NCBI RefSeq assembly: GCF_006345805.1
Contig: NW_021834891.1
Span: 1 to 43,335 of the forward strand
DNA length: 43,335 bases
Direction: 5' to 3'
Origin: Octopus sinensis
Lineage: Eukaryota
Part shown: positions 4,277 through 43,335 of the stretch, piece after piece
Layout: every line of letters starts with the position of its first letter
Numbering within the stretch: the stretch's first letter is position 1
The notes under the pieces: model-generated
Databases searched by the model: none
What the model saw: only the letters and a program-made list of their open reading frames with translations
What the model was told of the DNA's origin: nothing
Translations under genes and position numbers: made by a program

Positions 4277-4529
4277 GTGAGTATAAAATAATAGTTCCCA
4301 ATTGATTTCTGTAAGGTTTTCTTCCCCCGAGTATATTGTGCTTGAAAGAATAACTGAAAACAGCTTCCATTCCTATTTTCCAATTGAACAATTATCTGTA
4401 TAATAATTGTATTAAAGATATCGATTTACTGTGAGTTTATGAAATACCCATTGAGGTTAATGCTGTTGGTAATAATGTTCAAATTTTAAGACACAAAAGA
4501 GTTAATTTTGTCATTTGGTCACAGAACGC

Positions 4530-5375
4530 ATCATCATCATCATCATCACCATCATCATTTAACATCCGTTTCTTATGGTGGCATGGGTCGGACGATTTCA
4601 CTGGCAAGGCAGTAGGCTGCGTCAGGCTGCAATGTGATCTGGTAAGGTTTCCACATATGTATGCCATTCCTAACGCCAACCACTCCGAGAGTGTGGTGGG
4701 TGCCTTTTACGTGCCACCGACACAGGAGCCAGTTGAAGTTGGGGCTGGCATTAACCACGTTCGGAAGGTACTTTTTATGTGCCAACGGCACAGGGAACCA
4801 GTCAGGCGGCTCTGTCAACAAACAATGTTTGAATGGTACTTATTATGTGCCACCGGCACGGGTGCCAACCAGGCGGCACTGGCATCGGCCGTAATTACAA
4901 TTTCCATTTTGATTTCGATCTTGATTTGATTTTGATTTGTGATTTCTGGTTTTTGGTTTTACTTGACTCAGAAATTCTTCTCAAGCGCAACTTATCACTC
5001 TGTGATTCAAGGGTACTTTTAAAAAGGGCTGGTTATGCGCCACTGGTATATGCTACAGCCATGATCTCACTTCAATTGCCGGGTCCTCTTAATCACATCA
5101 TATTTACAGAGGTCTCTGTCTCTTGCCATTACCTCTGTGAGGCCCAACGTTCGAAGGTCGTTTCACCACGTCATGCCTGTCTTCCTGGGTCACCCCTTTC
5201 CACGGGTTCCTTCCACTGTTAGGGTGTAACACTTCTTCCCACAATTCTCCTCATCCATACCCATAACCATACCAGTGCAGTTGTCTCTCTTGTACACCAC
5301 ATCTGATGCTTCTTATGTCTAACACTTCTCTCAGGCCTCTTCACTCTGCCTTGTGTGCACACTGACATCGTTGCG
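4530..5375 (-). mobile_element. 5'-truncated RTE-type LINE, duplicate of 1171-2010
   Basis: Near-identical to 1171-2010 and in the same position within the duplicated unit. Confidence 0.8.
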
Positions 5376-15157: not shown

Positions 15158-16740
15158 CATCATCATCATCATCATCATTTAACGTCCGCTTTCCATGCTA
15201 GCATGGGTTGGACGGTTCAACTGGAGTCTGGGGAGCCCGAAGGCTGCACCAGGCCAGTCATATCTGGCAGTGTTTCTACAGCTGGATGCCCTTCCTAACG
15301 CCAACCACTCCGAGAGTGTAGTGGGTGATTTTATGTGCCACCGACACAGGTGCCAGGCGAGGCTGGCGAACGGCCACGCTCAAATGGTGTTTTTATGTGC
15401 CACCGACACAGGTGCCAGACGAGGCTGGCAGACGGCCACGCTCGGATGGTGTTTTTATGTGCCACCGACACAAGTGCCAGATGAGGCTGGCGAACGGCCA
15501 CGATCGGATGGTGTTTGTTACGTGCCCACAGCACGGAGGCCAGTCGATGCGGTACTGGCTACGGCCACGTTCGGATGGTTTTCTTGTGTGCCACCGGCAC
15601 TGGTACCATAAAGATACAAATTCCATTGATGTTCATCTATTTTGATTTGGTTTGATTTTCACTTGCCTCAACAGGTCTTCACAAGTGTCATAAGAAGGAA
15701 GGTATGCACAGGTGGACTGACTACGTCCCAGGTAGGGGCCACGGGTTATGGCCTGACTAGTCTTGCCGGGTCTTTGGATGGTGTTTTTATGTGCCACCAA
15801 CACAGGTGCCAGATGAGGCTGGCGAACGGCCACGATCGGATGGTGTTTGTTACGTGCCCACAGCACGGAGGTCAGTCGATGTGGTACTGGCTACCACCAC
15901 GTTCGGATGGTTTTCTTGTGTGCCACCGGCATTGGTACCACAAAGATACAAATTCCATTGATGTTCATCTATTTTGATTTGTTTTGATTTGATTTGATTA
16001 TGATTATGATTATCACTTGCCTCAACAGGTCTTCACAAGTGTCATTTGATTTGATTAGATTAGCACTTGCCTCAACAGGACTTCACAAGTGTCATAAGAT
16101 GGAAGGTATGCACAGGTGGACTGACTACATCCCAGGAAGGGGCCACGGGCTATGGCCTGACTAGTCTTGCCGGGTCTTCGGACAGGTGCCAGATGAGGCT
16201 GGCGAACGGCCACGATCGGATGGCGTTTGTTATGTGCCCACAGCACGGAGGCCAGTCGATGCGGTACTGGCTACAGCCACGTTCGGATGGTTTTCTTGTG
16301 TGCCACCGATACTGGTACCACAAAGATACAAATTCCATTGATGTTCATCTATTTTGATTTGGTTTGATTTTCACTTGCCTCAACAGGTCTTCACAAGTGT
16401 CACACACTTGCCTCTGCCTCAACAGGTCTTCACAAGTGTCACACACTTGCCTCTGCCTCAACAGGTCTTCACAAGTGTCACACACTTGCCTCAACAGGTC
16501 TTCACAAGTGTCATAAGAAGGAAGGTATGCACAGGTGGACTGACTACGTCGCCGGGTCTTCGGATGGTGTTTTTATGTGCCACCGACACAGGTGCAAGAT
16601 GAGGCTGGCGAACGGCCACGATCGGATGGTGTTTGTTGTGCCCACAGCACGGAGGCCAGTCGATGCGGTACTGGCTACGGCCACGTTCGGGTGGTTTTCT
16701 TGTGTGCCACCGTCACTGGTACCACAAAGATACAATTCCA
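15158..16740 (-). mobile_element. RTE-type LINE 3'UTR with internal tandem amplifications (62-bp, ~330-bp and 33-39-bp units)
   Basis: (CAT)n tail, then tttaacgtccgctttccatgctagcatgggttggacgg. ttttatgtgccaccgacacagg recurs at 15329, 15391, 15453, 15785 and 16571. Confidence 0.85.
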
Positions 16741-17269
16741 TATATATATATATACATACGTACATACATACATAAATACATACATATATAGGTGTATATA
16801 CCCACACACGCATATATACTATCTAAAACAAAATAATCTTCTGATCAAGTCCAAAGGTTTGTACTAGATATTGTTATTACTTTATATAGTTGTGGCGTGT
16901 AATTAAATGTAAATTATAAGCTAGTCAATGTTTATTTGTTAAAGGTATCAGCAGAAAGCTTGCATGCGTATGTGTGTCTGTTGGTGCGCCAATGCTCGTG
17001 TCCCCTTCGCAAGCGAAAAACGAGCCCGTTTCAATTCGAAACTGTCACGTCGGTTTTATATGACTAAGATGTTATTTTTTAGTTATCTCCCTTAATTAAA
17101 GAATATACACTTTTGGCACTATTTGCTCTTTTAATCTCTCACTTGTTTCAGTCGTTTGACTGCGGCCATGCTGGTGCACCACCTTTAGTCGAGCAAATCT
17201 ACCCCAGGACTTATTCTTTGTAAGCCTAGTACTCATTCTATCGGTGTCTTTTGCCGAACCGCTAAGTTG

Positions 17270-21696: not shown

Positions 21697-22322
21697 CATC
21701 ATCGTTTAACGTCCGTTTTCCATGCTAGCATGGGTTGGACGGTTCGACCGGGGTCTGGGAAGCCAGGAGGCTGGCAACGGCCACGATCGAATGGTGTTTT
21801 TTATGTGCCCCCAGCACGGAAGCCAGTCAAGACGGCGGTGGCATCAGTCACGTTGAGATGGTGTTTTGAAAGTGCCATTGGCGCGGGTATCAGAACTACA
21901 ATTTCCATTTGATGTTGATGTACTTGACTCAATAGGTCTCCTCAAGCACAGCAGGTCACCCCACGATCCAAGGTAACCACAGCAGGCCGTCCTGCGATCC
22001 AAGGTATTTCCGATGGGTTGGGGCTGTTATGTGAAGCTGCTGCAGGAAACAGCCTCACGTTATTTGTCGGGTCATCGCAGTTACAGCATATCTCCAGATG
22101 TCTCGGTCTTTCGTCATTGCCTCTGTGAGGCCCAACGCTCGAAGGTCATGCTTAATCACCTCATTCCATGTCTTCCTGGGTCTACCTCTACCCCGGATTC
22201 CTTCAACTGTTTGGGAGTGGCACTTTTTCGCACATCTCTTCTCATCCATCCGGAGAACATGACTATACCAGCGCAAACATCTTTCTTGCCTGCCACATCC
22301 GATGCTTGTTATGTCCAGCATT

Positions 22323-22329
<7 letters not shown>
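21697..22329 (-). mobile_element. 5'-truncated RTE-type LINE with an open C-terminal ORF2 fragment
   Basis: ORF 22055-22366 includes LRWYSHVLRMDEKRCAKKC..EGIRGRGRPRKTWNEVIKHDLRALGLTEAMTKDRDIWR. (CAT)n tail at 21697. Confidence 0.88.
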
Positions 22330-22358
<29 letters not shown>

Positions 22359-22362
<4 letters not shown>

Positions 22363-23853
22363 ACAATCAAGGAACGACCATAATAGGCCATTCACCCACT
22401 AGAAATAACAGCCAAAGCTTCAACCGCAAATAAAGATTAATTCCGTAAACAGGAGAAAATTTTAAAAAACATTTACCCTGTAATTTCTTGTACGATGTAC
22501 CGTTTCATCTGCTGTTTAATGGTAAACTAACCTGATTAAATTAAATCAAGCCAATCTTCCATAGGCCCTCAGATTCTTCAGCAAGAAATAGCCAAGTCGG
22601 AACAGATATTTTCACGAGGCATTTCCGACCCTGCCAAGGCAATATCTGACCTAAAATTTTCAAATCGTCGCACTGTTTACGGAATTAATCTTTATTTGCG
22701 GTTGAAGCTTGGCTGTTATTTCTAGTGGGTGAATGGCCTATTATGGCCGTTCCTTGATTGTTGATGTTGAACTTAAAAATGGTCTGTGACTATTTAATTT
22801 TTTCCCACTAGGTCGCTGGTGGCAAAAGGAATTCTACAAAATTTTTTTTGCCACCCTATATTGATTAATTATGGATTTTCTGTTAATTCCGTAATGGAAT
22901 CGGCGGCTTATATTTATTTGCTGCCGATAAATTTGGCGCGAGTGCGACGATTTGAAAATTTTAGGTCAGATATTGCCTTGGCAGGGTCGGAAATGCCTCG
23001 TGAAAATATCTGTTCCGACTTGGCTATTTCTTGCTGAAGAATCTGAGGGCCTATGGAAGATTGGCTTGATTTAATTTAATCAGGTTAGTTTACCATTAAA
23101 CAGCAGATGAAACGGTACATCGTACAAGAAATTACAGGGTAAATGTTTTTTAAATTTTCTCCTGTTTACGGAATTAATCTTTATTTGCGGTTGAAGCTTT
23201 GGCTGTTATTTCTAGTGGGTGAATGGCCTATTATGGCCGTTCCTTGATTGTTGATGTTGAACTTAAAAATGGTCTGTGACTATTTAATTTTTTCCCACTA
23301 GGCCGCTGGTGGCAAAAGGAATTCTACAAAATTTTTTTTGCCACCCTATATTGATTAATTATGGATTTTCTGGTTAATTCCGTAATGGAATCGGCGGCTT
23401 ATATTTATTTGCTGCCGATAAATTTGGCGCGAGTGCGACGATTTGAAAATTTTAGGTCAGATATTGCCTTGGCAGGGTCGGAAATGCCTCGTGAAAATAT
23501 CTGTTCCGACTTGGCTATTTCTTGCTGAAGAATCTGAGGGCCTATGGAAGATTGGCTTGATTTAATTTAATCAGGTTAGTTTACCATTAAACAGCAGATG
23601 AAACGGTACATCGTACAAGAAATTACAGGGTAAATGTTTTTTAAATTTTCTCCTGTTTACGGAATTAATCTTTATTTGCGGTTGAAGCTTTGGCTGTTAT
23701 TTCTAGTGGGTGAATGGCCTATTATGGCCGTTCCTTGATTGTTGATGTTGAACTTAAAAATGGTCTGTGACTATTTAATTTTTTCCCACTAGGCCGCTGG
23801 TGGCAAAAGGAATTCTACAAAATTTTTTTTGCCACCCTATATTGATTAATTAT
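22359..23853. repeat. ~490-bp tandem repeat (2.4 copies) preceded by an inverted ~315-bp copy, between (TA)n tracts
   Basis: Units start tgtttacggaatt at 22674, 23163 and 23654. 22359-22673 is the reverse complement of 22942-23255. Confidence 0.95.
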
Positions 23854-23886: not shown

Positions 23887-26800
23887 AAATATTATTAGAG
23901 ACAAAACCACTATTTTGCAAAGCAAACAAGGAAAGACTTAATCAATACATAAAATTTTAATAAATAGTCAAAAAAACCGCCACTACAATCGTTTCTTGTC
24001 TTGATCGACAATCTTCAGGTGGACTTCCAATCTAAAAAATCAAAATTTTAAAATATAAAAATAATAATTTTAAATAATTAAAGTATAAATGAAAAAATAT
24101 AAGTATATAATCCATATATAACCTATATATAATCCATATCGAAAATATAGACAAATTACCACGAATTCCCTAAAAAAAACCATGATAAAACAAAACTCTT
24201 AAAAACATATAACGATAAAATCTCCCTTTGCTAAATTCTAAAACAAACCTATATAGTAATCCCCCTAACCTAAACATTCACACACAAATACACACACGTA
24301 AACCACAGACCCACGACTTATACACATACCTATACTAACTTATAAACCTCAATATACACCAAAACCCACTCCCTCCCCACACAGACAAATTAACACATAC
24401 ATCCCAAAACCTAAATAACAAACCCATATACACATTCACACACAAACACACACACACACGCAAAACACGCACACACAACAGATACATATACTCCCTCACA
24501 TATACGCATATACATACTCACTAAACTCGACATATACAACAATACTTACACACCCACAAAAATCATTAAATACATTTATGAGCTTTAACTCAGCTTAGCA
24601 GCTCTAACAAACAACTTGCAGTAACCCAATCCCATTCTCTATGCCTACCTCACTACTACACTATTCCATTCACATTCCAAGCAACGCTAGTCCACCACCC
24701 GGTTATGCACGTGGCAAAACGAACACCACTCAAAAATTATGAATGAAACAATGTAAAAAAATAACCAACATCGAAAATAGACAAATTACCACGAATTACC
24801 TAAAAAAAACCATGATAAACCAAAACTCATAAAAGCATATAACGATAAAATCTCCCTTTGCTAAACCCTATAACAAACTTATATAGCAATCCCCCTAACC
24901 TAAACATTCACACACAAATACACACACGTAAACCACAGACCCAAGACTTATACACAAACCTATACTAACTTATAAACCTCAAAATACACCAAAACCCACT
25001 CCCTCCCACACAGACAAATTAACACATACATCCCAAAACCTAAATAACAAACCCAAATACACATTCACACACAAACACACACACACGCAAAACACACACA
25101 CACAACAGATACATATACTCCCTCACATATACGCATATACATACTCACTAAACTCGATATATACAACAATATTTACACACCCACACTCATACAGATAAAT
25201 AAATTAATTATACAACTAAAAACTCACAACCAATCTCATATACATAAACACTCCTATGAAAACAACATTAAATACATCGTAATTAACCAGAATATCAAAA
25301 ATAACAATATGACATAAGGATAAATCAAATACATACTTACAATTCAGTTACAAATTATGAAGTGAAATTAAATTCTTAGCCGTTAAAAAACCAAACAAAA
25401 ATTACGTTACCATAGAAATAACTTATGTAAAAAAAGAATACGCGCCATAGAAAGTAAACGTCATTCAAAATATGAATGGAGAAATATAATAAATGGAACT
25501 AAAAACTATATCACGTAGCAAACCAACGCTACTTAAAAAAATTTATTATGAATGGATTCTATAAAAACTACCATGAAAATCATTATATACATTTATGAGC
25601 TTTAGCTCACCCTAGCAGCTCTAACAAACAACTTACAGTAACCCATAACTATTCTCGATGCATACCTCACTACCACACTAATCCATTCACAATTCCAAGC
25701 AACGCTAGTCCACCACCCGGTTACAATTCCCAACTCCACCTATTCATTCACAATTTAAACGACGTTCCCTTCCACAACGCTACATATAAGCCTCAACATA
25801 TACACCGGAGATACACTTACACATCCGTGCGGATGGGTGAGAGTATACATTAAGTGTAGTGATGGGGCTCCCATTTCTAAACAATTTGTACCTATGTGGT
25901 AGTCTCCATGTGTATATTCACGCACGGGTATAAATGCAGGGGGTACACGCTCACTTCATTTGCGTGTACCCCTCACATGTACATATGCATACTATTTTGG
26001 CTCGATATATGCAACAATGTAATCGCGCCCGTGTGTGTGAGCATTCACTGGTTGTGCAATTCACCCATCTGGGTGTGAGTGGGTGTAAACGTATCGCTGT
26101 GGAGGTCGAGCTTGATACGTATATATTAGTGTGTATTAGGGGTTGTACGTACTAATTATGTGCATGTGCTTCACGCACTTGCGTCCATGTATGGATGAAT
26201 ATATTGGGATTACTATGTGGGTGTAAATAGGGTATGGGGGGGAGTTTTGTCATTGTATGGGTGTGGGTTTCATTTATGATGGTGGTTAGTTGGTGATTAT
26301 TAGTATGTTCTGTATATTTGGGTTAGTTATATATTATTCTAGTGTGTATAATTGTATACATATAATTGGTGTGAATGGGATTACTCCCATTTTTGGGGAT
26401 GTATGTGTTTATTTATCCATGTGGGGCGGGAGTGGCCGTTAGGTGCATATGCTGAGGCTCACATGCAATCCCAAGTACAACGAATGAAGTGGGCACTTAT
26501 ATTTGTTATGGGTGTGTGTACTTTATTATAAAAGACAATACCCAAATAAAATCTGTCAATTCAACATACAATAAAAAACAAAATACAAAGGGATCTTAAA
26601 CATTCACACATACATACAAAACTCAATAAAAACACCACTAAATAACACCCAAAACATATAAATATATCCTCCAATACATATAACAAATGCAAAATAAAAA
26701 TAAAAATAAAAATAAAAATAAAAAAATTAAAAAAATAAAAAAATCTAATATAAATTATTAAAGTTTTAACGTACCATAAACTGTTAAATTAATATACATT

Positions 26801-32871: not shown

Positions 32872-32999
32872 TTATCTACGAACACATGTTCTCCCATTGA
32901 AACGGAACCCTGGTTTACACAAACATTTGTAGGACCCTATTGTGTTGACGCATTTCCCGTATCTACCGCATCGAAAACTCCTTCTACACTCGTTTACAT
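32872..32999 (-). CDS. EMI-EGF gene last coding exon: calcium-binding EGF ([42 protein letters not shown])
   Basis: Acceptor ttttcatttgcag|, phase 1. D-x-N-E-C...C-x-N-x-x-G-S-Y-x-C cbEGF signature with 6 Cys. TAA at 32874-32872. Confidence 0.93.
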
Positions 33000-33304
33000 C
33001 TGCAAATGAAAACAAATTTATTGCACTTAATTGCATGTATATAAAACAGATGCATTATTTGGGGTTGGGTCAATGTAATAAGCACCAGTTATACTCTGGG
33101 GTCGATGTAATCGACTAGACCGATTCCCCCAAAAGTTTGTGACATTAAATATGTTCGTTGTTACACTGATTTTTACACGGATTTTTCAAACGGAAAAACA
33201 CTTTGTAACTTTAGTCCTGTGTTTTGTCCCTTTATGGTATAATTGATTTTTGTTAGCCCTTGTGGCGAATAAGCGAATTAATTATTATTATCTTTTTTCT
33301 TCTT

Positions 33305-33376
<72 letters not shown>

Positions 33377-33467
33377 TATTATTATTATTATTATTATCTC
33401 CCAGCCAATTGCTTATAGATATACGTGTGTATATTGTTCTTGTAGCTGCTGTTTGTCCTTTACTTAC

Positions 33468-33587
33468 CAACACATGTTCTTCTATTGAAATAATAGCCCC
33501 GTCTGCAGTAACAAGTGAAAGAGGTTCCTCTCTTGACGCATCTACCATTTCTCCCGCACCGATTCCATCTGCACGGTCCTCCGACGG
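33468..33587 (-). CDS. EMI-EGF gene exon: EGF repeat (AVGGPCRWNRCGRNGRCVKRGTSFTCYCRRGYYFNRRTCV)
   Basis: ctgctttccag| ... |gtaagt. 120 nt, phase 1-1, 6-Cys EGF spacing. Confidence 0.93.
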
Positions 33588-33865
33588 CTGGAAAGCAGAA
33601 CAGAAATAACACAATTATATATAACAATCAGAATTCTTTCATCATCATCATCATCATCATGATCATCATCATAATGACAGATAGTTACCACACCGGGTGT
33701 CATTTCGACAGCGTCTGTTCTTTCTAAGTTCAAACACCACAGACGTCAACTTTGCCTTTCATCGCTTCCGGGTCGATTGAATAAGTAACAGATGTTCACT
33801 GGGGTCGATGTAATCGACTTATCCCCGACCCAGAATTACTTGCCCTCTGTGGCAATTTGGAAATC

Positions 33866-33871
33866 ATCATT

Positions 33872-33923
<52 letters not shown>

Positions 33924-34045
33924 ACATCATCATCATCAATCATCATCATCATCATCATCATCATCACACATCATCATCATCATCATTATCATCATTATGA
34001 TCATCAACACCAACATCATCATCATCATCATCACCATCATTATTA

Positions 34046-34095
<50 letters not shown>

Positions 34096-34116
34096 TATTA
34101 TTATTATTATTATTCA
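33866..34116. repeat. (CAT)n to (TAT)n compound trinucleotide microsatellite
   Basis: Directly visible. Confidence 0.95.
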
Positions 34117-34447
34117 TATACACACAACCAGCCAGACTGTTAGAAAAGAAAAGACCCAAACAGGGGTCTACAAGCCGCCTTAAATATCAAGAACCCACCT
34201 ATTGGGTTGCAGCAAGTAACCTTAGATGCCAAGATCCCTCCTAAGCTTCTTAGCTGTCCATAATAACACTGTTTTCTGGAGCTGTACGAAACTGGGTTTT
34301 CTGCCTATGTCCTCTCTCCATCTGTTCAGACCTTTAGGGATAGTTTCCAATGCTCCTATAACTACTGGGACGCATTTTACCCGCACTTTCCATAGTTTCG
34401 GTAATTCAATGGCTACGTCCTGGTACTCTGCTATTTTTTCTATGGAT
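34117..34447 (-). mobile_element. 3' end of an R4/Dong-like (restriction-like endonuclease) LINE
   Basis: EKIAEYQDVAIELPKLWKVRVKCVPVVIGALETIPKGL..IG..QLQKTVLLWTAKKLRRDLGI* matches the RLE C-terminus of the R4 clade. The 3' end runs into (TAA)n. Confidence 0.75.
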
Positions 34448-34828
34448 GGAAGCACTCCGTTGGTTACGACGATGATGGTTCCGGTTGATCCGAATCAATG
34501 GAACAGCCTGCTCGTGAAATTAACGTGTAAGTGGCTGAGCACTCCACTGACACGTGCACCCTTAACGTAGTTCTCGGGGAAATTCAGTGTGACACTGAGA
34601 GTGACAAGGCCGGCCCCTTGAAATACAGGTACAACAGAAACAGGAAGTAAGAGTGAGAGAAAGTTGTGGTGAAAGAGCACAGCAGGGATCACCACCATCC
34701 CCTGCCAGAGCATCGTGGAGCTTTTTAGGTGTTTTCGCTCAATAAACACTCACAACGCCCGGTCTGGGAATCGAAACCGCGATCCTATGACCGCGAGTCC
34801 GCTGCCCTAACCAGTGGGCCATTGGGCC
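34448..34828 (-). mobile_element. Full-length tRNA-derived SINE (third family)
   Basis: Minus head ggcccaatggcccactggttagggcagcggactcgcgg..gcggtttcgattccc has A- and B-box-like motifs. The same head occurs at 19255-19310 (+). Confidence 0.8.
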
Positions 34829-35374
34829 TCATTTTTTTTCTATACTTCCCATATTAATGTTTTCATCATTTGGGACCGTAAAGTCGGTTATCTGGCACTT
34901 TCTATTCTCTTTATCTTCTGCTACCAAATCAGGCCTTCTAGCTTCTATTACTGTCAGTCTGAATGACGAACTCCCACAACATCTTATATTTCTTACTTTC
35001 TAATACTTTTCCAGGTTCGTGTTCATACCATTTGTCAGCATGTTAAAAATCCTAGATGTCCACACAAATCCCAGTGGATTACTCTACCGAAGATGTCATA
35101 TATTTTCTTGAATTCTTTCTGTGACGTCATGCTATATTCAATTACTATATGAGAAATGCCTTCTTCCTTTGATTTGCATAGGCTACATTTGGAATCTAAT
35201 TGGTTTTTGTATATCTTGGTGTTTATCCAATTAGTCCTTAAAACTTGATCCCGTGCTGCTACTAAAAAATTTCTCCCATTTTAAACTTCCTTTATGCAAC
35301 CGTAGCCATGTCTCAGTTATTATTATTATTATTATTATTATATTATTATTATTATTATTATTATTATTTTTATT

Positions 35375-35590
35375 AAGGTCTCGAGCTGGCAGAGTCGTTA
35401 GCGTGCGGGGCGAAATCTTTGCGGTATTTCGTATGTCGCTACGTTCTGAGTTCAAATTTCACAGAGGTCGACTTTGCCTTCCATCGTTTTGGGGTCGATA
35501 AATTGAGTACCAGGTGAGTAGTGGGGTCGACGTAATCGACTTACCACACACCAAAATTCCAGGCCTTCTGTCTAGAGTAGAAAAGATTAT
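35375..35590 (+). mobile_element. Meta-SINE-like element
   Basis: gagctggcagagtcgttagc..gagttcaaatttc..gaggtcgactttgccttccatcg..gggtcgataaattgagtacc. Confidence 0.78.
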
Positions 35591-35644
35591 TACTTATACA
35601 TAAACGTGTGTTGTTGTTGTTGTTGTCTATTCTGCTTCACTTAC

Positions 35645-35764
35645 CAACGCATGTTCTCCCATTGAAACGGAAACCTCGACGACAGAAACATCTGTAGGAT
35701 CCTGGGGTGTTGATGCATCTCCCGTATCTTCCGCACACATACTTCCATCTGCACTCGTTTCTGT
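35645..35764 (-). CDS. EMI-EGF gene exon: calcium-binding EGF ([40 protein letters not shown])
   Basis: tttacttttccag| ... |gtaagt. 120 nt, phase 1-1, cbEGF signature. Confidence 0.94.
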
Positions 35765-35807
35765 CTGGAAAAGTAAAACAAATTCATTGCATGGATGTAA
35801 CACTTAT

Positions 35808-36330
35808 GTATCATCATCATCACCATCCTCATCATAACCATCATCATCATCATCGTCGTCATCATCATAATCATCATCATCATCACCACTACCACCACCA
35901 TCATCATCTTCATCATCATAATCATCATAATCATCATCATCATAACCATCATCATCGTCTTCGTCATCATCATCATCATCACCACCACCACCATCATCAT
36001 CTTCATCATCATTATCATCATCATCATCAACATCCTCATCATTACCATCATCATCATCGTCGTCATCATCATCATCACACCACCATCACCACCATCATCA
36101 TCATCACCACCATTATCATCATCATCATCATCCTCATCATAACCATCATCATCATCTTCATCATTATCATCATCATCATCATCATCACCATCATCTTCAT
36201 CATCATATCATCATCATCATCATCACCACCATCATCATCATCATTATCATCATCATCATAACCATCACCACCATCATCTTCATCATCATAATTATCATCA
36301 TCATCAGCAGCAGCATCACCACCATCATTA
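35808..36330. repeat. Long degenerate (CAT/CAC)n trinucleotide tract (intronic)
   Basis: Directly visible; it is the source of the poly-His and poly-Met ORFs. Confidence 0.95.
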
Positions 36331-36485
36331 TTGATATTGATGTTTTGGTTGGTGTTATTCTTCAGGTGGTACGCTGGGAGGATTGTAACAAAAACCACTG
36401 AAACAGTGGCGGGAGGGGAGCGATGTGATCGACTATCCCCCACCGCTAAAATTTCAGGCCTTCTGCCTACAGTAAAAGGGATTAA

Positions 36486-36539
<54 letters not shown>

Positions 36540-36540
<1 letters not shown>

Positions 36541-37050
36541 GAGAGAGAGAGAACAGTACTTGTCATCAAAGTGACACTAGGGTAAAATATACGAAGCCCA
36601 GTATACCCATCATGACTACCCGTTTGATAAGGGTATACTAGGCACATGTTTCACAACCACATGTGTGCCACATGATGATCTCATTTCAAGATAAACAGCA
36701 CATGACCTTGCAGGTGGGGCCCAGTTGGAAATGTCTTCAGTTGGAGTAGCCCATCCCGCTCAAAACGTCCCTAAATAAATTGTTTAAGGATGTTGAACAA
36801 ACCACCCATGTTTCCAAAGGTGAATTATCCAAACCTCCAAGAATGCCTCTCAACACGTGGCTATGATGCTCCCCCACTACTTCTGCTCATGATCAGAGAT
36901 GCACAAATCGTCAGCCACTAAGGGACATGCTCAAACTGGTTAAGGTCAAACAAATGACAAGCAAATCTGTTGTACTGAGCAGAATATGTGCTGCAGCCCA
37001 AAACTTCGAATCAGTTAAGATCAGAAACCATGAAAGCCACTGTGGGGCAT
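36540..37050 (-). mobile_element. Longest copy of the (AAT)n-tailed SINE-like retroposon
   Basis: Same family as 32514-32830, 37822-38012 and 41322-41600, extending further 5'. Confidence 0.7.
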
Positions 37051-37089
37051 TTATTATTATAATTGTTATCATTATTATTATTATTGTTA

Positions 37090-37142
<53 letters not shown>

Positions 37143-37176
37143 GTTGTTGTTGTTGTTGTTGTTGCTGTTGTAGTTG

Positions 37177-37222
<46 letters not shown>

Positions 37223-37292
37223 CTCCCAGCCAATTGCTTATAGATATACGTGTGTATATTGTTCTTGTAGCTGCTGTTTGTCCTTTACTTAC

Positions 37293-37412
37293 CAACACAT
37301 GTTCTTCTATTGAAATAATAGCCCCGTCTGCAGTAACAAGTAAAAGAGGTTCCTCTCTTGACGCATCTACCATTCTTCCCGCACCGATTCCATCTGCACG
37401 CTCCTCCGACGG
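37293..37412 (-). CDS. EMI-EGF gene exon: EGF repeat (AVGGACRWNRCGKNGRCVKRGTSFTCYCRRGYYFNRRTCV)
   Basis: ctgctttccag| ... |gtaagt. 120 nt, phase 1-1; differs from 33468-33587 by 4 nt. Confidence 0.93.
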
Positions 37413-37477
37413 CTGGAAAGCAGAACAGAAATAACACAATTATATATAACAATCAGAATCCTTTCAACATCATCATT

Positions 37478-37515
<38 letters not shown>

Positions 37516-37770
37516 AATTATCATCGTGGTCGTCGTCGTCGTTAGCAGAATCGTTTGCACGACGGTAAAAATGTTTGGCGGCATTTTGTCCGTCTTTACA
37601 TTCTGTGTTCAAATCCGCCTTTCTTTCAGGGTCAAGAAAACAAATTTATTGCGCTTAATTGCATGTATATAAAACAGATGCATTATTTGGGGTTGGGTCA
37701 ATGTAATAAGCACCAGTTATACACTGAGGTCGATGTAATCGACTAGTCCCCTTCTCCAAAATTTAGTGAA

Positions 37771-37823
<53 letters not shown>

Positions 37824-38059
37824 GTGAGAGAGCAGTGCATACCATCAAAGTGACACTGGGATAAAATATACGAAGCCCAGTATACCGCTCATGACAACCC
37901 GTCTCACAAGGGTACACCAGGCACATGCATCACAACCATATGTGTGCGACATGGGGATCTCATATCAAGATAAACAGCACATGACCTTGCAGGTGGGGCC
38001 CAGTTAGAATTTTTGTACCATCCTCATCATCATCATCATCATTGTGGTTGTTATTATTA

Positions 38060-38270
38060 AGGCGGTGAGCTGGCAGAGTCGTGAAAACGCCGGACAAAAT
38101 TCTTAGCGTTATTTCGTCGTAACGAGTTCAAAATCTGCCAATGTCGACGTTGGAATCCATCGTTTCGGAGTCGATGAAATGAGCACCATTGAAATATTAG
38201 GCTCAATGTAATCGACTGACCCCCACCTAACCCCAAAATATCAGGCCTTTTGCCTATTGTAGAATAAGTT
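38060..38270 (+). mobile_element. Meta-SINE-like element, diverged
   Basis: aggcggtgagctggcagagtc..gagttcaaatctgcc..gtcgatgaaatgagcacc..ggccttttgcctattgtagaa. Confidence 0.7.
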
Positions 38271-38608
38271 AGATGCACCATGTTCTTTTAACAGAAGTCA
38301 GACCTTTCTCAGCTCAGTTGCTGTGGCAAAGGGATTACATACATCAAAATGCACTCCATCTGATCAAATATGGTGGAAAGAAGACGAGACGATACGACGC
38401 TCATTTGCATATATTACAATATAAAACAGGAAAAAGAAAATTGAAGAAATAGCGATGTCTTTCTTCAAAGGATTGTGATACGAAAGAAAAAGGAAATTTG
38501 AAACGAGACCATTGGATGTCATATTTGGATATAAAATAGAAAATATCAAGAAAATATTAGGCCTTATCTACACATAACATCCGGAGAGAACTGAACACAT
38601 GTTCTTAC

Positions 38609-38685
38609 CTCTGCACCTTCCAGGCGTGCCGGTCCATCCTCTGCAGCATCTGCGACAGGTTGTAAGGATTCTCCTGGAAGCTGTA
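38609..38685 (-). CDS. EMI-EGF gene exon: EMI domain second half (RTASRRILTTCRRCCRGWTGTPGRCR)
   Basis: ctctcatttaacag| ... |gtaaga. 77 nt, phase 2-1, in frame with both neighbours. Contains the CC.GW.G...C EMI terminus. Confidence 0.9.
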
Positions 38686-39205
38686 CTGTTAAATGAGAGA
38701 AGGATAGAATAAAAGGATATATAACCAGAAGGATATATAACACAATGATGGTAAGTTCAGACAACCACACAAACACATACATACACACATACAAGTTACA
38801 CTTTCAGAATATACGACTGTGTAGTCTGAAAATGCGATTATCCTAAATAAAGTGCTTTTCACATTGAAGGCTCTGATGAAGCTAGAGCATGATATCCTGG
38901 TACTCAACTAATCCTCCACCACAACCTACATCAGAAACAGCTGTTAGCCAATGAAGTGCGTTACATAACCTTTGTTTTTGCCGGTGCCATTTCTTTGCTT
39001 TCTCTTACCATTTTACACTTATCTACAATTGAATTCTGGATCACACCTAGATTGAGTTCTACACCATATTGTTATTTTCGCTATGCCCAAGCGAAATATT
39101 AAGATATTAATGTGCGAGGGTAATGAATACTTTGTCATCGGTGGATGCCGTAATATTGAAAGTTTACTCTGTATAGAAAATCCGGAAAGGTGGCTTCGTA
39201 TTTAC

Positions 39206-39298
39206 CGGTATTTTGTACACCGTCTCAAAAACCAGCACCAGCTTCTTCGGGCCCTTTTGTAGGTCACGGTTTTATAACATCTCACTCGACATATTCCC
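39206..39298 (-). CDS. EMI-EGF gene exon: EMI domain first half (RGICRVRCYKTVTYKRARRSWCWFLRRCTKYR)
   Basis: ttctttttttccag| ... |gtaaat. 93 nt, phase 2-2. C...C..W..RC..YR EMI pattern. Confidence 0.9.
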
Positions 39299-39539
39299 CT
39301 GGAAAAAAAGAAAGAAGGAATATATAAGTGTGTGTGTGTGTATAAATATATATACATATACATATAAACGCATATAACACTATAAAAATAAAATCCCTTG
39401 AAGGAATGGGTGGGGGGTTCCAGAGATATAAAAAGACGAATATACAAAGAACTGACTTGCGATCGCCTTGGAAACAAGGCCACTACTCAACGACATTAGA
39501 TCACTAAGTGTCGATGTAATCGCCATCAGTGAAACTAGA

Positions 39540-41225
39540 CTTTCCGACCGACATGCTTTCTTGCCATCTTTCGCGGGATACGAGAAGTATTTATCTCCAT
39601 GTCAACCGGGAATCGGAGGTTGAACGGCGGCGTTGATCCGTAGGGGCATGGATCTCAACATAAGGACTATCTTCCTGGATCCAGAAGGAGAGATGATGGT
39701 CCTGGATGCGAATTGTAGTGACGGGGGTACTTACAGACAGGTACCTGTTTATACTCCGATAGAAGCAGGGAAGCCGTATATCTTCAGACATCGAGAGGTA
39801 TTCCTAGGAATGCCTCGAAATTTAGAGTTAGTGGGCAACTGGTACGGTGCCTTAGAGATACAATTGGACTGTGTGGGTCTAGCGAATAGAAAGCGGATGG
39901 TAAAAGCCTGTATGGGGTCAACCAGGTCGTATTTTGATGAGGAACGGGGTTCTATAGGCAAGTAGATTAACGTTAGTAGAAGTTGTTAACCTAGATAGGC
40001 TTAGAAGGCAGGGATCCGGTTACTGGAGGCTGAAAGCGTTGCTCCCAAAGTGCCAATCCAACAGAGACCGAATTAGACAATTAACTAAGATGGCGTTGAT
40101 GGGGCTAATCGTCAACAACAAATGATGGTTGGCGTTAGGTAGGTTTATTAAAGCATTAGTGGTAGAGATGGATAAAACAGAAGGGAATTTAGTCAGTAAC
40201 TTCGAAATGGCGCTTTGGAAGAACATTGCAGCTGACCTGCTTGCTGCAAGATTAGCTCTGGACCATTTGCTCAAAGATAAACACGAAGGTTGCCTTGTCA
40301 GATCTAAGGTGCACTCTGTAAGAGAAGAGGGAAGGAAAGCCCCATAATGGGGGTCGAATGACAGACGCACAACGTCAAAGCAAAGTCACTATTCAGTCTT
40401 TGGTGGACCAAAATGGGCGCAAGGAACTCCAACCGGAGAAGATGTGTGAGGTATTTCAAGATCCCTTTGGCAAATGTGTGGAACGTAAAGATATCCAGAA
40501 CGTAGGATGAACAAACGGATTAAGTCGATTATATCGATCCCAGTGTGTTACTGGTACTTATTTAATCGATCCCGAAAAGATGAAAGGCAAAGTCGACCTC
40601 GGCGGAATTTGAACTCACAACGTAACGGCTGTCGAAATACCGCTAAGCATTTCTCCCGTCGTGCTAACGATCCGCCTTTGTTTGACAGCCTTCTAGTAGA
40701 TCTGCCAGAACTGCTACCGTAACTGGTACCAGAACAGGCCATTTCCCAATTCTGTGAGTCTAGGAGCGGTGGCACTGCTAAAAATGGACCCAAACAAGGG
40801 AGATGAAATAGAAAACTAGGTTCATAACGCTGCTGAACACAGACATCAAACTTTCGAGCAGGCTGTTAGCAAAGGGGTCGGCGCTTATCATCGAAGAACT
40901 GCTCCCACTTGGAGGACGGATTCGGATTTCAGCTAAGTTATTGGTAAGGATCAGCCCGCTGCTTTCTTCCAACCGGGAGGGACAGGCATCTTTGCTTAGT
41001 CTAGTGGCCATAGCGAAAGAGGTTGCCTGGTGGACCTTGCTGAAAGGGCTGAAGACAGACACTTTCCTCTTTACCCAGAATCTCAAAGTGAGGGTAAAGA
41101 GGGAAGTGCTGCCACCTAGCAATTTTGTTAAAAGATGGGTGAATGTAGCTCGAATGGCCCTAGTGAATGGTCTTTCTAGAAGTACGCGCCTGTACATTAA
41201 GGGCACATGAAGTGAAGAGAGCATA
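39540..41225 (+). mobile_element. Decayed Tx1/L1-like LINE ORF2 (APE endonuclease and RT fragments), interrupted by a SINE at 40508-40676
   Basis: IFLDPEGEMMVLD..VYTP..LELVGNW..QLDCVG (APE-like); EGCLVRSKVHSVREEG (linker); RFITLLNTDIKLSSRLLAK (RT start, RPISLLNTDYK-like). Confidence 0.7.
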
Positions 41226-41321
41226 CACCCTAGATGTCAGAGTGATCGTTGTTTTTGTGGGGTTTCAATGAGCAGCCCCTTTTGTGTAAACCCTTAGTGG
41301 CGAAAAAAGAAATTATTATTA

Positions 41322-41600
41322 TTGAGTGAGAGAGCAGTGCATGCCATCAAAGTGACACCGTGGTAAAATATACGAAGCTCAGTATACCCATCATGACTAC
41401 CCGTCTGATAAGGGTACCCCAGGCACATGCATCACAACCATATGTGCGGGACATGGTGATCTCATATCAAGATAAATAGCGCATGATCTTGCAGGTGGGG
41501 ACCAGTTAGAATTTTCTTCTGGTCGAGAAGCCCATCCCACTCCAAAGTTCACTGAATAAGGGTTGTTTAAGGATGTTGAATAAGGGTTGTTTAAGCTATA
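41322..41600 (-). mobile_element. (AAT)n-tailed SINE-like retroposon fragment
   Basis: Same sequence as 32514-32830. Confidence 0.75.
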
Positions 41601-42011
41601 TTTGACCCGTCGCTCCGTTCTGATTTCGAATTCCCCAAAGTGCACTTTGCTTTCTTCCTTTCAACGTCGAGAAAATAACAGACTAGGCTCTATGTAATCG
41701 ACTCGCCCTCACCTCACCCCAAGCTGCTCTTGTGGCAGAAATTTGAAATCACACTAATTATCATTATTATTTGAAACAGTTTTATTTGGGCCCCTTCAGG
41801 TTCGTCGCTCCGTTACAGGAATCTGGCTTGTTGAAGATTGGCGCAACAGAACCAGAATATATCCAGAAAGTTGGTGGAACATCCCAATAGAATCAGCAAA
41901 CAGGATTAAATACAGCGGACCCTATATTGATGCAAGGATCAGGAAAACAAGTCAAGTACTTTTAGGAGAGATCGTCTGCCCAGTCGTATGTCAATATCTC
42001 ATCGTATTAAA

Positions 42012-42410
42012 GAAGCGAGCTGGCAGAAACGTTAGCACGCCGGGCGAGATGCTTAGCGGTATTTCGTCTGCCGTTACGTTCAGAGTTCAAATTCCGCCGA
42101 GGTCGACTTTGCCTTTCATCCTTTCGCGGTCAATAAATTAAGTGCCAGTTACACACTGGGGTCGATAAAATCGACTTAATCCCTTTGTCTGTTCTTGTTT
42201 GTCCTCTCTGTGTTTAGCTCCTTGTGAGTAGTAAAGAAATACGTATTTCGTCTGCCGTTAGGTTCTGAGTTCAATTTACGCCCAGGTCGACTTTGCCTTT
42301 CTTCCTTTCGGAGTCGATTAAATATGTACCAGTTACGCACTAGGGTCGATATAATCGACTGGCCCCCTCCCTCCAAATTTCGGGCCTTGTGCCTCAAGTA
42401 GAAAAGAATA
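42012..42410 (+). mobile_element. Meta-SINE-like element with one internal ~190-bp duplication
   Basis: Head gcgagctggcagaaacgttagcacgccgggc, B-box gagttcaaattcc, and the core repeated at ~42245. Reverse complement of the array at 20290-20955. Confidence 0.85.
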
Positions 42411-42821
42411 TCTCATCATATATTAAAGAAAAAGAGGGATCTATGGAGAACTGTTTGAAAAAATACAGTTATGATATACAGGCTATGGGTTTTCATTTCT
42501 ACCTACTGACAGAGATGCACTGGGCTAAGTAAAAACAGATCGACATAAAAACTACAAATGCTGGGGTAATTCAGGTACCCTGAGTCCCTTCTGTTGCAAT
42601 CGTTAGGGCCAAGCCCCACCTCACCCATTGCTTCCCACATATGCCAGGGGCCCTGAACAGAGCTACGGGCTCAACTCCTCTCTTTTCACTAAAACACTTA
42701 AAACATTCACACGAAGATAGACACGGTCCGATTATTTAATAAGAAAAAAGTAAAAAACCACAAGAAGCCCCGAAGAGGAAAGTGGCGATGTGAAACCGGG
42801 TGGAATGAAGCATTAACTTAC

Positions 42822-43335
42822 CGAGAACTGGACACAGCAAGGCTTTCTCCTTCGGTTGTTGAGTTTCCAGAATCAAGCGTTTCGCTAGAAACCGACGTTC
42901 CATTATTCAGTAAGAGACTCTCAGTCGCTGCTTCATCTTCACTCTCGGAATCTGCTTCATCCGCTGACTCCTCTTCGTCCACTGACTCGTCGTCACCCAC
43001 TGATAGTCCTCCATCGTTTGAGTCTTCATCCGCTGACTCGCCTTCATCCACTGACTCGTCTCCCACCACTGACTCGTCGTCGTCCACCCATAGTCCTCCA
43101 TTATTTGAGTCTTCACCCTCTGACTCGTCTTCATCCACTGACTTCTCTCCATCCACTAACTCGTCTTCACCGTCCTCTGACGACGCGTCATCCACCGGGA
43201 CTCCGTCCTCTTCTGATTCCTCTCCACCCTCTAACAATCCTTCGTCATCTGATTCTGCTCCACTCTCTTCTGGCTCTTCATTATCCGATGAAACATCATT
43301 TACCGACGGGTCTTTGTCCCCTAATGTGACATTCT
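42822..43335 (-). CDS. EMI-EGF gene exon: hyperacidic Asp/Glu/Ser-rich region (5' end outside the window)
   Basis: Frame is open from the window edge (NVTLGDKDPSV...EGESLAVSSSR) to the donor TCTCG|gtaagt. Phase 2 joins exon 39298 in frame. 66 of 171 residues are D/E. Confidence 0.88.

Follow-up and report, generated by a model that had tools for sequence, protein, structure and literature searches.

An unannotated Octopus gene, present in several copies, that encodes a secreted protein joining a hyperacidic block to an arginine-rich array of EGF modules

We analyzed a stretch of Octopus sinensis DNA of 43,335 bases (hereafter, the window), which is an entire unplaced contig (NW_021834891.1, here C11362) of a 2.72 Gb assembly consisting of 13,516 contigs. 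On its minus strand, the window carries one copy of an Octopus-restricted, multi-copy, and unannotated gene for a secreted two-block protein: a hyperacidic N-terminal block is followed by an Arg-rich block made up of a Cys-rich, EMI-like domain and four EGF modules. The two blocks have net charges of -61 and +55; the calculated isoelectric point (pI) is 4.05 for the acidic half, 10.7 for the basic half, and 5.3 for the complete protein. By analogy with known precursors, the protein may be read as a charge-compensated precursor, in which an acidic, pro-piece-like block would mask a polycationic EGF rod that is later unmasked; we put this reading forward tentatively, as quite possible rather than probable.

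The preliminary description of this DNA had proposed a seven-exon, in-frame gene, and all of its exons were recovered at their minus-strand positions with GT..AG sites and agreeing phases. All internal exon boundaries follow the canonical AG|exon|GT pattern, and the spliced coding sequence of 1170 nucleotides (nt) contains no internal stops and terminates with TAA. The domain order given there held for the four EGF-type modules, two of them calcium-binding (cbEGF), which were recognized by Pfam; the name EMI was not confirmed by Pfam, no match to PF07546 being obtained. The parts of the gene are listed below (ORF, open reading frame; LINE, long interspersed nuclear element).

Exon 1, 43333-42822 (stretch 42822..43335), minus strand: hyperacidic, Ser/Gly-containing, predicted disordered block; 5' end cut by the contig end
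Intron 1, 39299..42821, minus strand: GT..AG, phase 2; holds LINE-like ORF fragments on the plus strand
Exon 2, 39298-39206, minus strand: Cys-rich EMI-like domain, first half, GICRVRCYKTVTYKRARRSWCWFLRRCTKY-R
Exon 3, 38685-38609, minus strand: second half of the EMI-like domain, TASRRILTTCRRCCRGWTGTPGRCR
Exon 4, 37412-37293, minus strand: EGF module A1, AVGGACRWNRCGKNGRCVKRGTSFTCYCRRGYYFNRRTCV
Exon 5, 35764-35645, minus strand: cbEGF module B
Exon 6, 33587-33468, minus strand: EGF module A2
Exon 7, 32999-32872, minus strand: cbEGF module C, then an RR tail and the stop codon TAA; no further domains

A segment of the chromosome-scale contig C27 at ~21.14-21.19 Mb matches the window contig with 100% identity and carries the gene on its plus strand. 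A 100-N scaffold gap (C27:21185261-21185360) is located exactly at the end of the window contig, inside exon 1. Because the window ends inside exon 1 and the gap falls at the same point of C27, the start of this copy is unassembled. Two sister copies, one on contig C10767 (98% identical) and the other, C27b, on C27 (C27:21316630-21327187), were assembled through the missing 5' end. In both of them, the same open frame runs upstream to an ATG codon and reads MKNLVLFLFLFVVGLWVTEG|QRV.., where MKNLVLFLFLFVVGLWVTEG is a typical signal peptide that begins with a few polar residues, continues with a hydrophobic core, and has small residues at positions -3 and -1. The start codon and the signal peptide, which the preliminary description had suggested looking for upstream, were thus both found in the same exon of the sister copies, and exon 1 is predicted to encode the start Met, the signal peptide, and the acidic block. 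Since the signal peptide is present in exon 1 of the sister copies, the protein is taken to be secreted; a membrane anchor was absent from the window protein, the chain of which stops two residues past the last cbEGF module. Both C11362 and another contig, C11170, recur inside C27, and the assembly therefore carries redundant copies of the region.

The visible acidic part comprises 171 amino acids (aa), including 66 acidic residues (30 Asp and 36 Glu) and only three basic ones (two Lys and one Arg), exactly as had been counted before. Exon 1 ends with ..GNSTTEGESLAVSSS-R, the Arg codon being split by intron 1. Three N-x-S/T sites were found in the acidic block, which may accordingly be N-glycosylated. 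A Fam20C-type phosphorylation cluster was not indicated, with only 3 S-x-E sites present. In the AlphaFold2 (AF2) model of P0016, an orthologue-like protein described below, the predicted local distance difference test score (pLDDT) was <50 throughout the acidic block, which is consistent with intrinsic disorder.

A tandem repeat at 42955..43171 (minus strand), inside exon 1, has a period of 87 nt with 2.5 copies (83% matches) and is built from an 18-nt sub-unit (6 aa, DESVDE-like) repeated 12 times. The length of the mature N-block differs between the gene copies: 191 aa with a net charge of -61 in the window type vs. 226 aa with a net charge of -81 in C27b. Short-linker paralogues (C10; C27 at 20.998 and 21.028 Mb; P0036, P0001, P0038, P0039, and P0040) have a linker of 38-75 aa, flanked by the same signal peptide and exon-1 end (..DSGNSTTEGESL..) as in the window gene. 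Because these paralogues have both ends of exon 1 in common with the window gene around a short linker, and because of the tandem repeats, the acidic block is an insertion grown by expansion of the 18/87-nt repeat. Divergence between the two exon-1 types is 2.6-3.6% vs. 0.2-0.4% in introns (Fisher p = 1e-6 to 3e-11); this excess can be accounted for by slippage of the repeat or by gene conversion.

The C-terminal part of 218 aa contains 49 Arg, 10 Lys, 2 Asp, 2 Glu, 32 Cys, 6 Trp, 14 Tyr, and 11 Phe residues (219 aa and 50 Arg if the junction Arg is included), which reproduces the earlier count of 49-50 Arg and 10 Lys against four acidic residues. Arg and Lys together make up 27% of this block, and Arg alone 22%. 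A 56-aa, 8-Cys EMI-like domain (+18) comes first and is followed, in this order, by the EGF modules A1, B, A2, and C, each 40 aa long and with net charges of +10, +8, +10, and +7 (plus the RR tail), respectively. The net charge of 167 EGF modules, taken as controls from 27 unrelated EGF proteins, was -1.3 +/- 2.8 with a maximum of +6. The charge polarity, noted previously as unfamiliar for the EGFL7/8 family, is thus far out of the range usual for EGF proteins: +7 to +10 per module vs. a control maximum of +6.

The EGF families PF00008, PF07645, PF12662, and PF12947 of Pfam were tested. Matches to the window protein covered four EGF-type stretches and exceeded the cut-offs for cEGF (3.3e-21; 75.2 bits vs. 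26.6), EGF_3 (8.8e-18; 64.7 vs. 28.5), EGF_CA (5.6e-14; 52.5 vs. 27), and EGF (41.5 vs. 21.5), placing the modules among EGF/cbEGF domains. The calcium-binding consensus D-x-[DN]-E-C ... C-x-[DN]-x4-[FY]-x-C is present in modules B (DRNEC..CINTPGSYRC) and C, and direct reading of the protein hence agrees with the earlier assignment of two of the four modules as calcium-binding. Modules A1 and A2 do not carry this signature and contain AVGG[AP]C..CVKRGTSFTC instead; A1 has no acidic residues at all. Only four acidic residues remain in the 218-aa basic block, and they coincide with the D and E of the D-x-N-E-C motif in modules B and C. In three other copies, the calcium-ligand D of module B is replaced with Y; the other changes in the basic block between copies include K->R, S->R, and W->R.

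The GC content of the exons was 0.48-0.51 vs. 0.40 in introns. Arg enrichment is not a GC artefact, because 30 of the 49 Arg codons are AGA. Exon 6 (A2) arose from exon 4 (A1) by a recent tandem duplication: the two lie in 300-nt blocks, intron flanks included, that share 97% identity at a spacing of 3825 nt. In a Foldseek search, the AF2 model of paralogue P0036 matched the EGF arrays of NELL, EMR2, Notch, and fibrillin. Exons 2-7 diverge between copies at the intron rate; positive selection on the basic block was therefore rejected, only the repeat-bearing exon 1 being elevated.

The domain encoded by exons 2 and 3 is probably EMI-derived and about 20 residues shorter than EMI. The Pfam EMI family (PF07546, gathering score of 25 bits) had no match in the whole protein at E<=1 and none at E<=10 in the isolated domain or a paralogue, and for this reason we call the domain EMI-like rather than EMI; the same test gave 55.9 bits for a genuine octopus EMI reconstructed from contig C2 (spliced). 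The label originally given nevertheless stands in part, since the domain shares with the genuine EMI gene the arrangement of its Cys residues, the CCxGW motif, and the place and phase of the intron. The Cys framework C..C..C-x5-C....CC-x-G-[WYF]-x-G..C is present, with one extra Cys and with each half ~10 aa shorter than in genuine EMI, and exon 3 carries the CCxGWxGxxxxC signature. After exon 2, a phase-2 intron interrupts an Arg codon located 4 residues past the C-x5-C pair (C-T-K-Y-R|); in the genuine EMI gene (C2:90174048-90174176/90190031-90190120), a phase-2 intron lies in an Arg codon at the same relative place (C-S-T-L-R|). This coincidence, drawn from one comparison, is suggestive of a common gene structure with a bona fide EMI gene.

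Alignment of the family profile with the genuine octopus EMI by hhalign covered only the CCxGW motif (probability of 9.6%), and the profile of the EMI-like domain had 0 matches among PDB sequences at E<=10. The AF2 model of the EMI-like part consists of a confident long beta-hairpin and a small hairpin (pLDDT 82-90). In the Foldseek search with the P0036 model, only EGF arrays were found and no solved counterpart of the EMI-like part; when compared with PDB, the P0016 model gave only chance beta-hairpin matches (E>1), including stems of pore toxins, which we consider meaningless. The domain is basic in every member measured (+11 to +18), and 23 of ~60 columns do not vary when it is aligned across four sequences.

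The family was found only in Octopus. An exhaustive phmmer search with the N-block and EMI-like domain of the orthologue against 1.84 billion representative proteins returned five relatives, all of them octopus family members, and the closest database proteins were all from Octopus species. No full-length counterpart of the window gene was found among 5.8 billion clustered sequences, and a search with the A+B module pair for short annotated Arg-rich EGF fragments found nothing. The best named match was the Octopus vulgaris 'fibulin-1-like isoform X1' (CAI9741403.1; P0001), with an identity of 51-52%. In the genome, five gene copies all keep the twelve splice sites, 32 Cys residues, and open frames; near-identical further copies are located on unplaced contigs. 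Two unplaced copies (C10767:18727-21591 and C11577:11751-14648) contain an extra cbEGF-EGF-cbEGF (B-A-C) exon set past the stop-bearing exon, reflecting either a varying number of modules in the array or sequence available to longer isoforms. The stop-bearing exon reads GTAGAT where other EGF exons have the donor site; it looks like a decayed donor.

The vertebrate secreted proteins EGFL7 and EGFL8 have a similar layout, with a signal peptide, a Cys-rich domain ending in CCxGWxG..C, and then EGF and cbEGF modules, but both the hyperacidic block and the Arg-saturated EGF modules are absent from them. The resemblance to EGFL7/8 pointed out in the preliminary description did not extend to a detectable sequence relationship: no EGFL7/8 was among the word-indexed matches, exhaustive phmmer returned octopus relatives only, none being outside the octopus family, and Pfam EMI had no match.

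P0016 (UniParc UPI00069532CB, MetaClust) is the one orthologue-like entry found in the databases: it is 84-86% identical to the window protein and has a signal peptide, a 238-aa acidic block with a net charge of -82, and an EMI-like domain of +18. It is probably a transcript-derived ORF of O. bimaculoides. P0016 joins exons 1-2-3 exactly as predicted for the window gene and then reads into intron 3, where this partial model comes to its end; because of the translated 5' leader and the absent stop, we infer that it is the ORF of an incompletely spliced transcript. It differs from the window gene in its RRSR|G junction (SSSR|G in the window gene) and in running only as far as intron 3. Orthologues of ordinary charge, named earlier as evidence that would speak against the proposal, were not what we found: as P0016 keeps both the -82 acidic block and the same +18 EMI-like domain, the hyper-charged design is conserved in a second species.

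Octopus proteins annotated as 'fibulin-1-like' or 'adhesion G protein-coupled receptor E2' (P0001; P0036 of O. bimaculoides; P0038, P0039, and P0040) are true paralogues of the window gene. They share with it the signal peptide (MKNLVLFLFVFVVG.W.TEGQ), the linker end DSGNSTTEGESL, the 8-Cys EMI-like domain, and an array of one (cb)EGF module per exon, with 51-52% identity over the Cys-rich part. The linker of these paralogues, however, is only 38-75 aa long with a net charge of -4 to -9, and their EGF modules carry -4 to +6 each, vs. -61 to -81 and +7 to +10, respectively, in the window gene. The automatically assigned name fibulin-1 was rejected: the anaphylatoxin-like domain PF01821 and the C-terminal module PF22914, both carried by the real fibulin-1 matches in the database, are absent from the window protein and from P0001.

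The net charge of the N-linker and the mean charge per EGF module were compared in nine family members:

C10: N-linker -4, mean EGF 0.0
P0036: N-linker -5, mean EGF +2.0
P0039: N-linker -8, mean EGF -3.8
P0038: N-linker -9, mean EGF +1.5
P0001: N-linker -9, mean EGF +3.8
Window: N-linker -61, mean EGF +8.8
C8L: N-linker -67, mean EGF +8.3
C8R: N-linker -68, mean EGF +5.7
C27b: N-linker -81, mean EGF +9.0

The two charges co-vary, with a Spearman rho of -0.84 (p = 0.005) that is not corrected for shared ancestry. This co-variation is most simply explained if the acidic block neutralises the basic block, and the acidic half probably has that role. The neutralisation proposed in the preliminary description thus received indirect support from the family; a canonical convertase site was not seen at the junction of the five copies.

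The members C8L and C8R form a divergently oriented gene pair on another chromosome (C8:72620826, minus strand, and C8:72628172, plus strand; loci L024 5490-6122 and L025 3088-3750). Exon 1 of this pair is hyperacidic by means of a different repeat (ESEDEG), with net charges of -67 and -68, and its EGF exons carry +4 to +12; one EGF exon copy of C8L is frameshifted. The blocks of C8R have about -68 vs. at least +34, the EMI-like exon being excluded from the latter value. The N-terminus of the pair is closest to that of P0039, the EGF modules of which are acidic. Together, these sequences suggest that the C8 pair represents a second, separate escalation of both charges.

A layout of an acidic propiece and a cationic effector, as found in the window gene, defines a functional class and not a homology family. 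Pro-eosinophil major basic protein (PRG2) and the pro-alpha-defensins, like the window gene, combine a signal peptide, an anionic pro-piece, and a cationic disulfide-rich domain, the charges of which roughly cancel. In proMBP-1, the acidic propiece (residues 17-106) is believed to neutralise the basic MBP-1 (pI 11.4, +15) during transport (PMC11483036). These precursors differ from the window gene in having a C-type lectin or defensin fold instead of EMI-like and EGF modules, and the charges of the window gene are ~4 times those of PRG2-type precursors (-61/+55 vs. about -15/+15). Cleavage and cytotoxicity are documented for PRG2 and the pro-alpha-defensins.

In the charge-compensated precursor, the role of the acidic block would be that of a counter-polyion linked covalently to the polycationic rod, comparable to the pro-pieces of pro-eosinophil major basic protein and the pro-alpha-defensins, and it would keep this rod soluble and harmless through folding, packing, and secretion. 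The working part would be the disulfide-knotted cationic rod, which may bind polyanionic surfaces such as sulfated glycans, mucins, and cell or microbial surfaces. Unmasking could result from a cut at the junction Arg (SSSR|G in the window gene, RRSR|G in P0016, and KR in paralogues) or, alternatively, from screening of the acidic block by Ca2+ and Mg2+ of seawater. The masking, the unmasking, the target, and the biological role are all what we infer.

The junction between the blocks was read from the spliced sequence as ..SSSR|GIC, with the Arg codon split CG|G, in line with the original reading. Most members have a basic residue 1-2 positions ahead of the first Cys in the EMI-like domain: the five copies all read SSSR|G, and the other sequences are ..AVRRSR|GLCRV.. 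in P0016, TKR|T in P0001 and P0038, RHRK|C in P0039, PKR in C8L, and TTR in C8R. The RRSR sequence of P0016 has the form of a putative furin-type site, and processing at the junction is plausible in part of the family judging by these motifs. In other, short-linker paralogues, FRPP or WTPP is found at the junction, and the basic residue is absent.

Several observations weigh against the charge-compensated precursor. The five copies have a lone Arg (SSSR|G) without basic residues at P4 or P2, which is a non-canonical convertase site; because of this and of FRPP/WTPP in several paralogues, a conserved processing site is not demonstrated. The charge balance is approximate only (-81 vs. +56 in C27b). 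P0001 is moderately cationic (+33) with an acidic compensation of only -9 and yet is secreted; neutralisation is hence not obligatory. The nine points of the comparison are not phylogenetically independent, and the hyper-charged lineages that arose independently may number only two. As exons 2-7 differ between copies just as introns do, they do not demonstrate selection on the basic block over this time-scale. Finally, no description of this family was found in the octopus literature searched.

Among the alternatives, the main one, which we consider rather unlikely, is that the protein stays uncleaved and self-assembles as a diblock polyampholyte, the acidic tails binding the rods of other molecules to form a coacervate or gel; it could serve as a glue, a cement of the egg stalk or egg case, a mucus cross-linker, or a matrix of beak or suckers. 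The nearly cancelling charges of the blocks fit this, as do the abundance of the usual cohesive residues in the basic block (22% Arg; 6 Trp, 14 Tyr, and 11 Phe of 218 residues), repeat-driven length and copy-number variation typical of structural and adhesive secreted proteins, the retained cbEGF calcium sites, which would stiffen the rod in seawater, and the absence of a canonical cleavage site from the copies of this genome. However, sites of dibasic or furin type lie precisely at the junction in the orthologue and several paralogues, the cationic block is not disordered but folded and locked by disulfides, and purely electrostatic coacervation is weaker at the ionic strength of seawater. 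A role in calcium handling or in a biomineral matrix (e.g., of statolith, stylet, or egg case), with the Asp/Glu block binding Ca2+ or mineral and the basic rod anchored to an anionic matrix, is quite improbable. The rise of the EGF charge alongside the acidic block would be left unexplained by it, octopuses have little mineralised tissue, and only 3 S-x-E sites are available, so heavy phosphorylation by secretory kinases is not indicated; on the other hand, the cbEGF calcium sites are kept, hyperacidic D/E/S-rich repeats are characteristic of the shell-matrix proteins of molluscs, in which EGF modules are also frequent (PMC9290575; bioRxiv 10.1101/2021.07.10.451900). Among such molluscan proteins, Gigasin-2/EGFL and EGF-ZP/LUSP-17 are likewise secreted and contain tandem EGF modules, often amid acidic repetitive matrix proteins (PMC9290575). 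Their architecture is nevertheless different: a signal peptide plus a pair of EGF modules is followed by a ZP or ZP-like domain, without an EMI-like domain or acidic N-block. As the architecture differs and the searches show no relationship, they were rejected as relatives.

We also doubt that the gene encodes an ordinary 'fibulin-like' matrix EGF protein, the extreme composition of which results from repeat slippage and drift in a young, redundant family. This would account for the mutational hot spot in exon 1 (2.6-3.6% vs. 0.2-0.4% in introns between copy types) and agrees with the recent tandem duplications and with the automatic naming of paralogues as fibulin-1-like; yet the fibulin-defining domains are absent, and drift leaves unexplained the removal of all acidic residues but the calcium ligands across 218 aa, the charge of +7 to +10 per module vs. 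a maximum of +6 in 167 controls, and the separately built hyper-charged C8 pair. The polarity is, moreover, kept in a second species. It is highly improbable that the locus is a non-functional copy or an assembly artefact, i.e., a redundant haplotig of a decaying, unexpressed duplicate. The complete identity of the window contig to part of C27, the near-identical copies on unplaced contigs, the frameshifted EGF exon copy of C8L, and the unassembled start of this copy could all be taken that way, but the five copies retain their twelve splice sites, 32 Cys residues, and open frames, and a database protein of another species joins exons 1-3 exactly as predicted.

Other features of the window were also recorded. 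LINE-like ORF fragments are located at 39456-41236 (plus strand) in intron 1, at 34222-34494 (minus strand) in intron 5, and at 22055-22366 (minus strand) upstream of the gene's 3' end; they include an endonuclease-like part and an ORF2 tail of the '..RGRGRPRKTWNEVIKHDL..' type and represent ordinary transposon debris. About 2 kb at 24000-26000 (plus strand) is nearly G-free, with a GC skew of -0.65 and -0.41 and an AT skew of +0.35; this C/A-rich, strand-asymmetric tract was not called a tandem repeat by Tandem Repeats Finder. Two ORFs of ~165-170 aa (1055-1567 and 4435-4929, plus strand) are ~90% alike and lie 3.4 kb apart. Together with a run of similar units ('..FMCHRHRCQMRLANGHDRMVF..') at 15183-16775 (plus strand), they probably belong to a dispersed or tandem repeat family.

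EGF, cbEGF, and EMI-like modules and the principle of an anionic pro-piece are already known; their combination, its scale, the use of EGF modules as a polycation, and the family-wide charge series are not described in the literature searched. For now, the gene represents a testable oddity and an annotation gap, since public octopus annotations miss this multi-copy secreted gene, and its biological importance depends on experiment. Its possible use in biomaterials or antimicrobial discovery would likewise hinge on tissue and activity. If the charge blocks are functional, the design would be one found otherwise only in small immune effectors (pro-defensins and proMBP) and multi-protein marine glues, here at a roughly four-fold scale and with a polycation built from EGF modules, which are normally acidic. 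A bolder reading, to which we allow only a modest chance, is that a diblock polyampholyte, its disordered polyanion joined to a folded EGF rod stiffened by calcium, evolved within this young Octopus family, possibly twice (the C27 and C8 clusters), with its charges kept balanced by selection, and acts either as a material that self-assembles upon secretion (a glue used under water, an egg cement, or a mucus cross-linker) or as the first EGF-fold cationic effector with an anionic safety catch; if true, either would be a protein design without earlier description. With linkers of -4 to -81 and EGF modules of -4 to +10, the family is a ready series for the study of co-evolution of opposite charge blocks.

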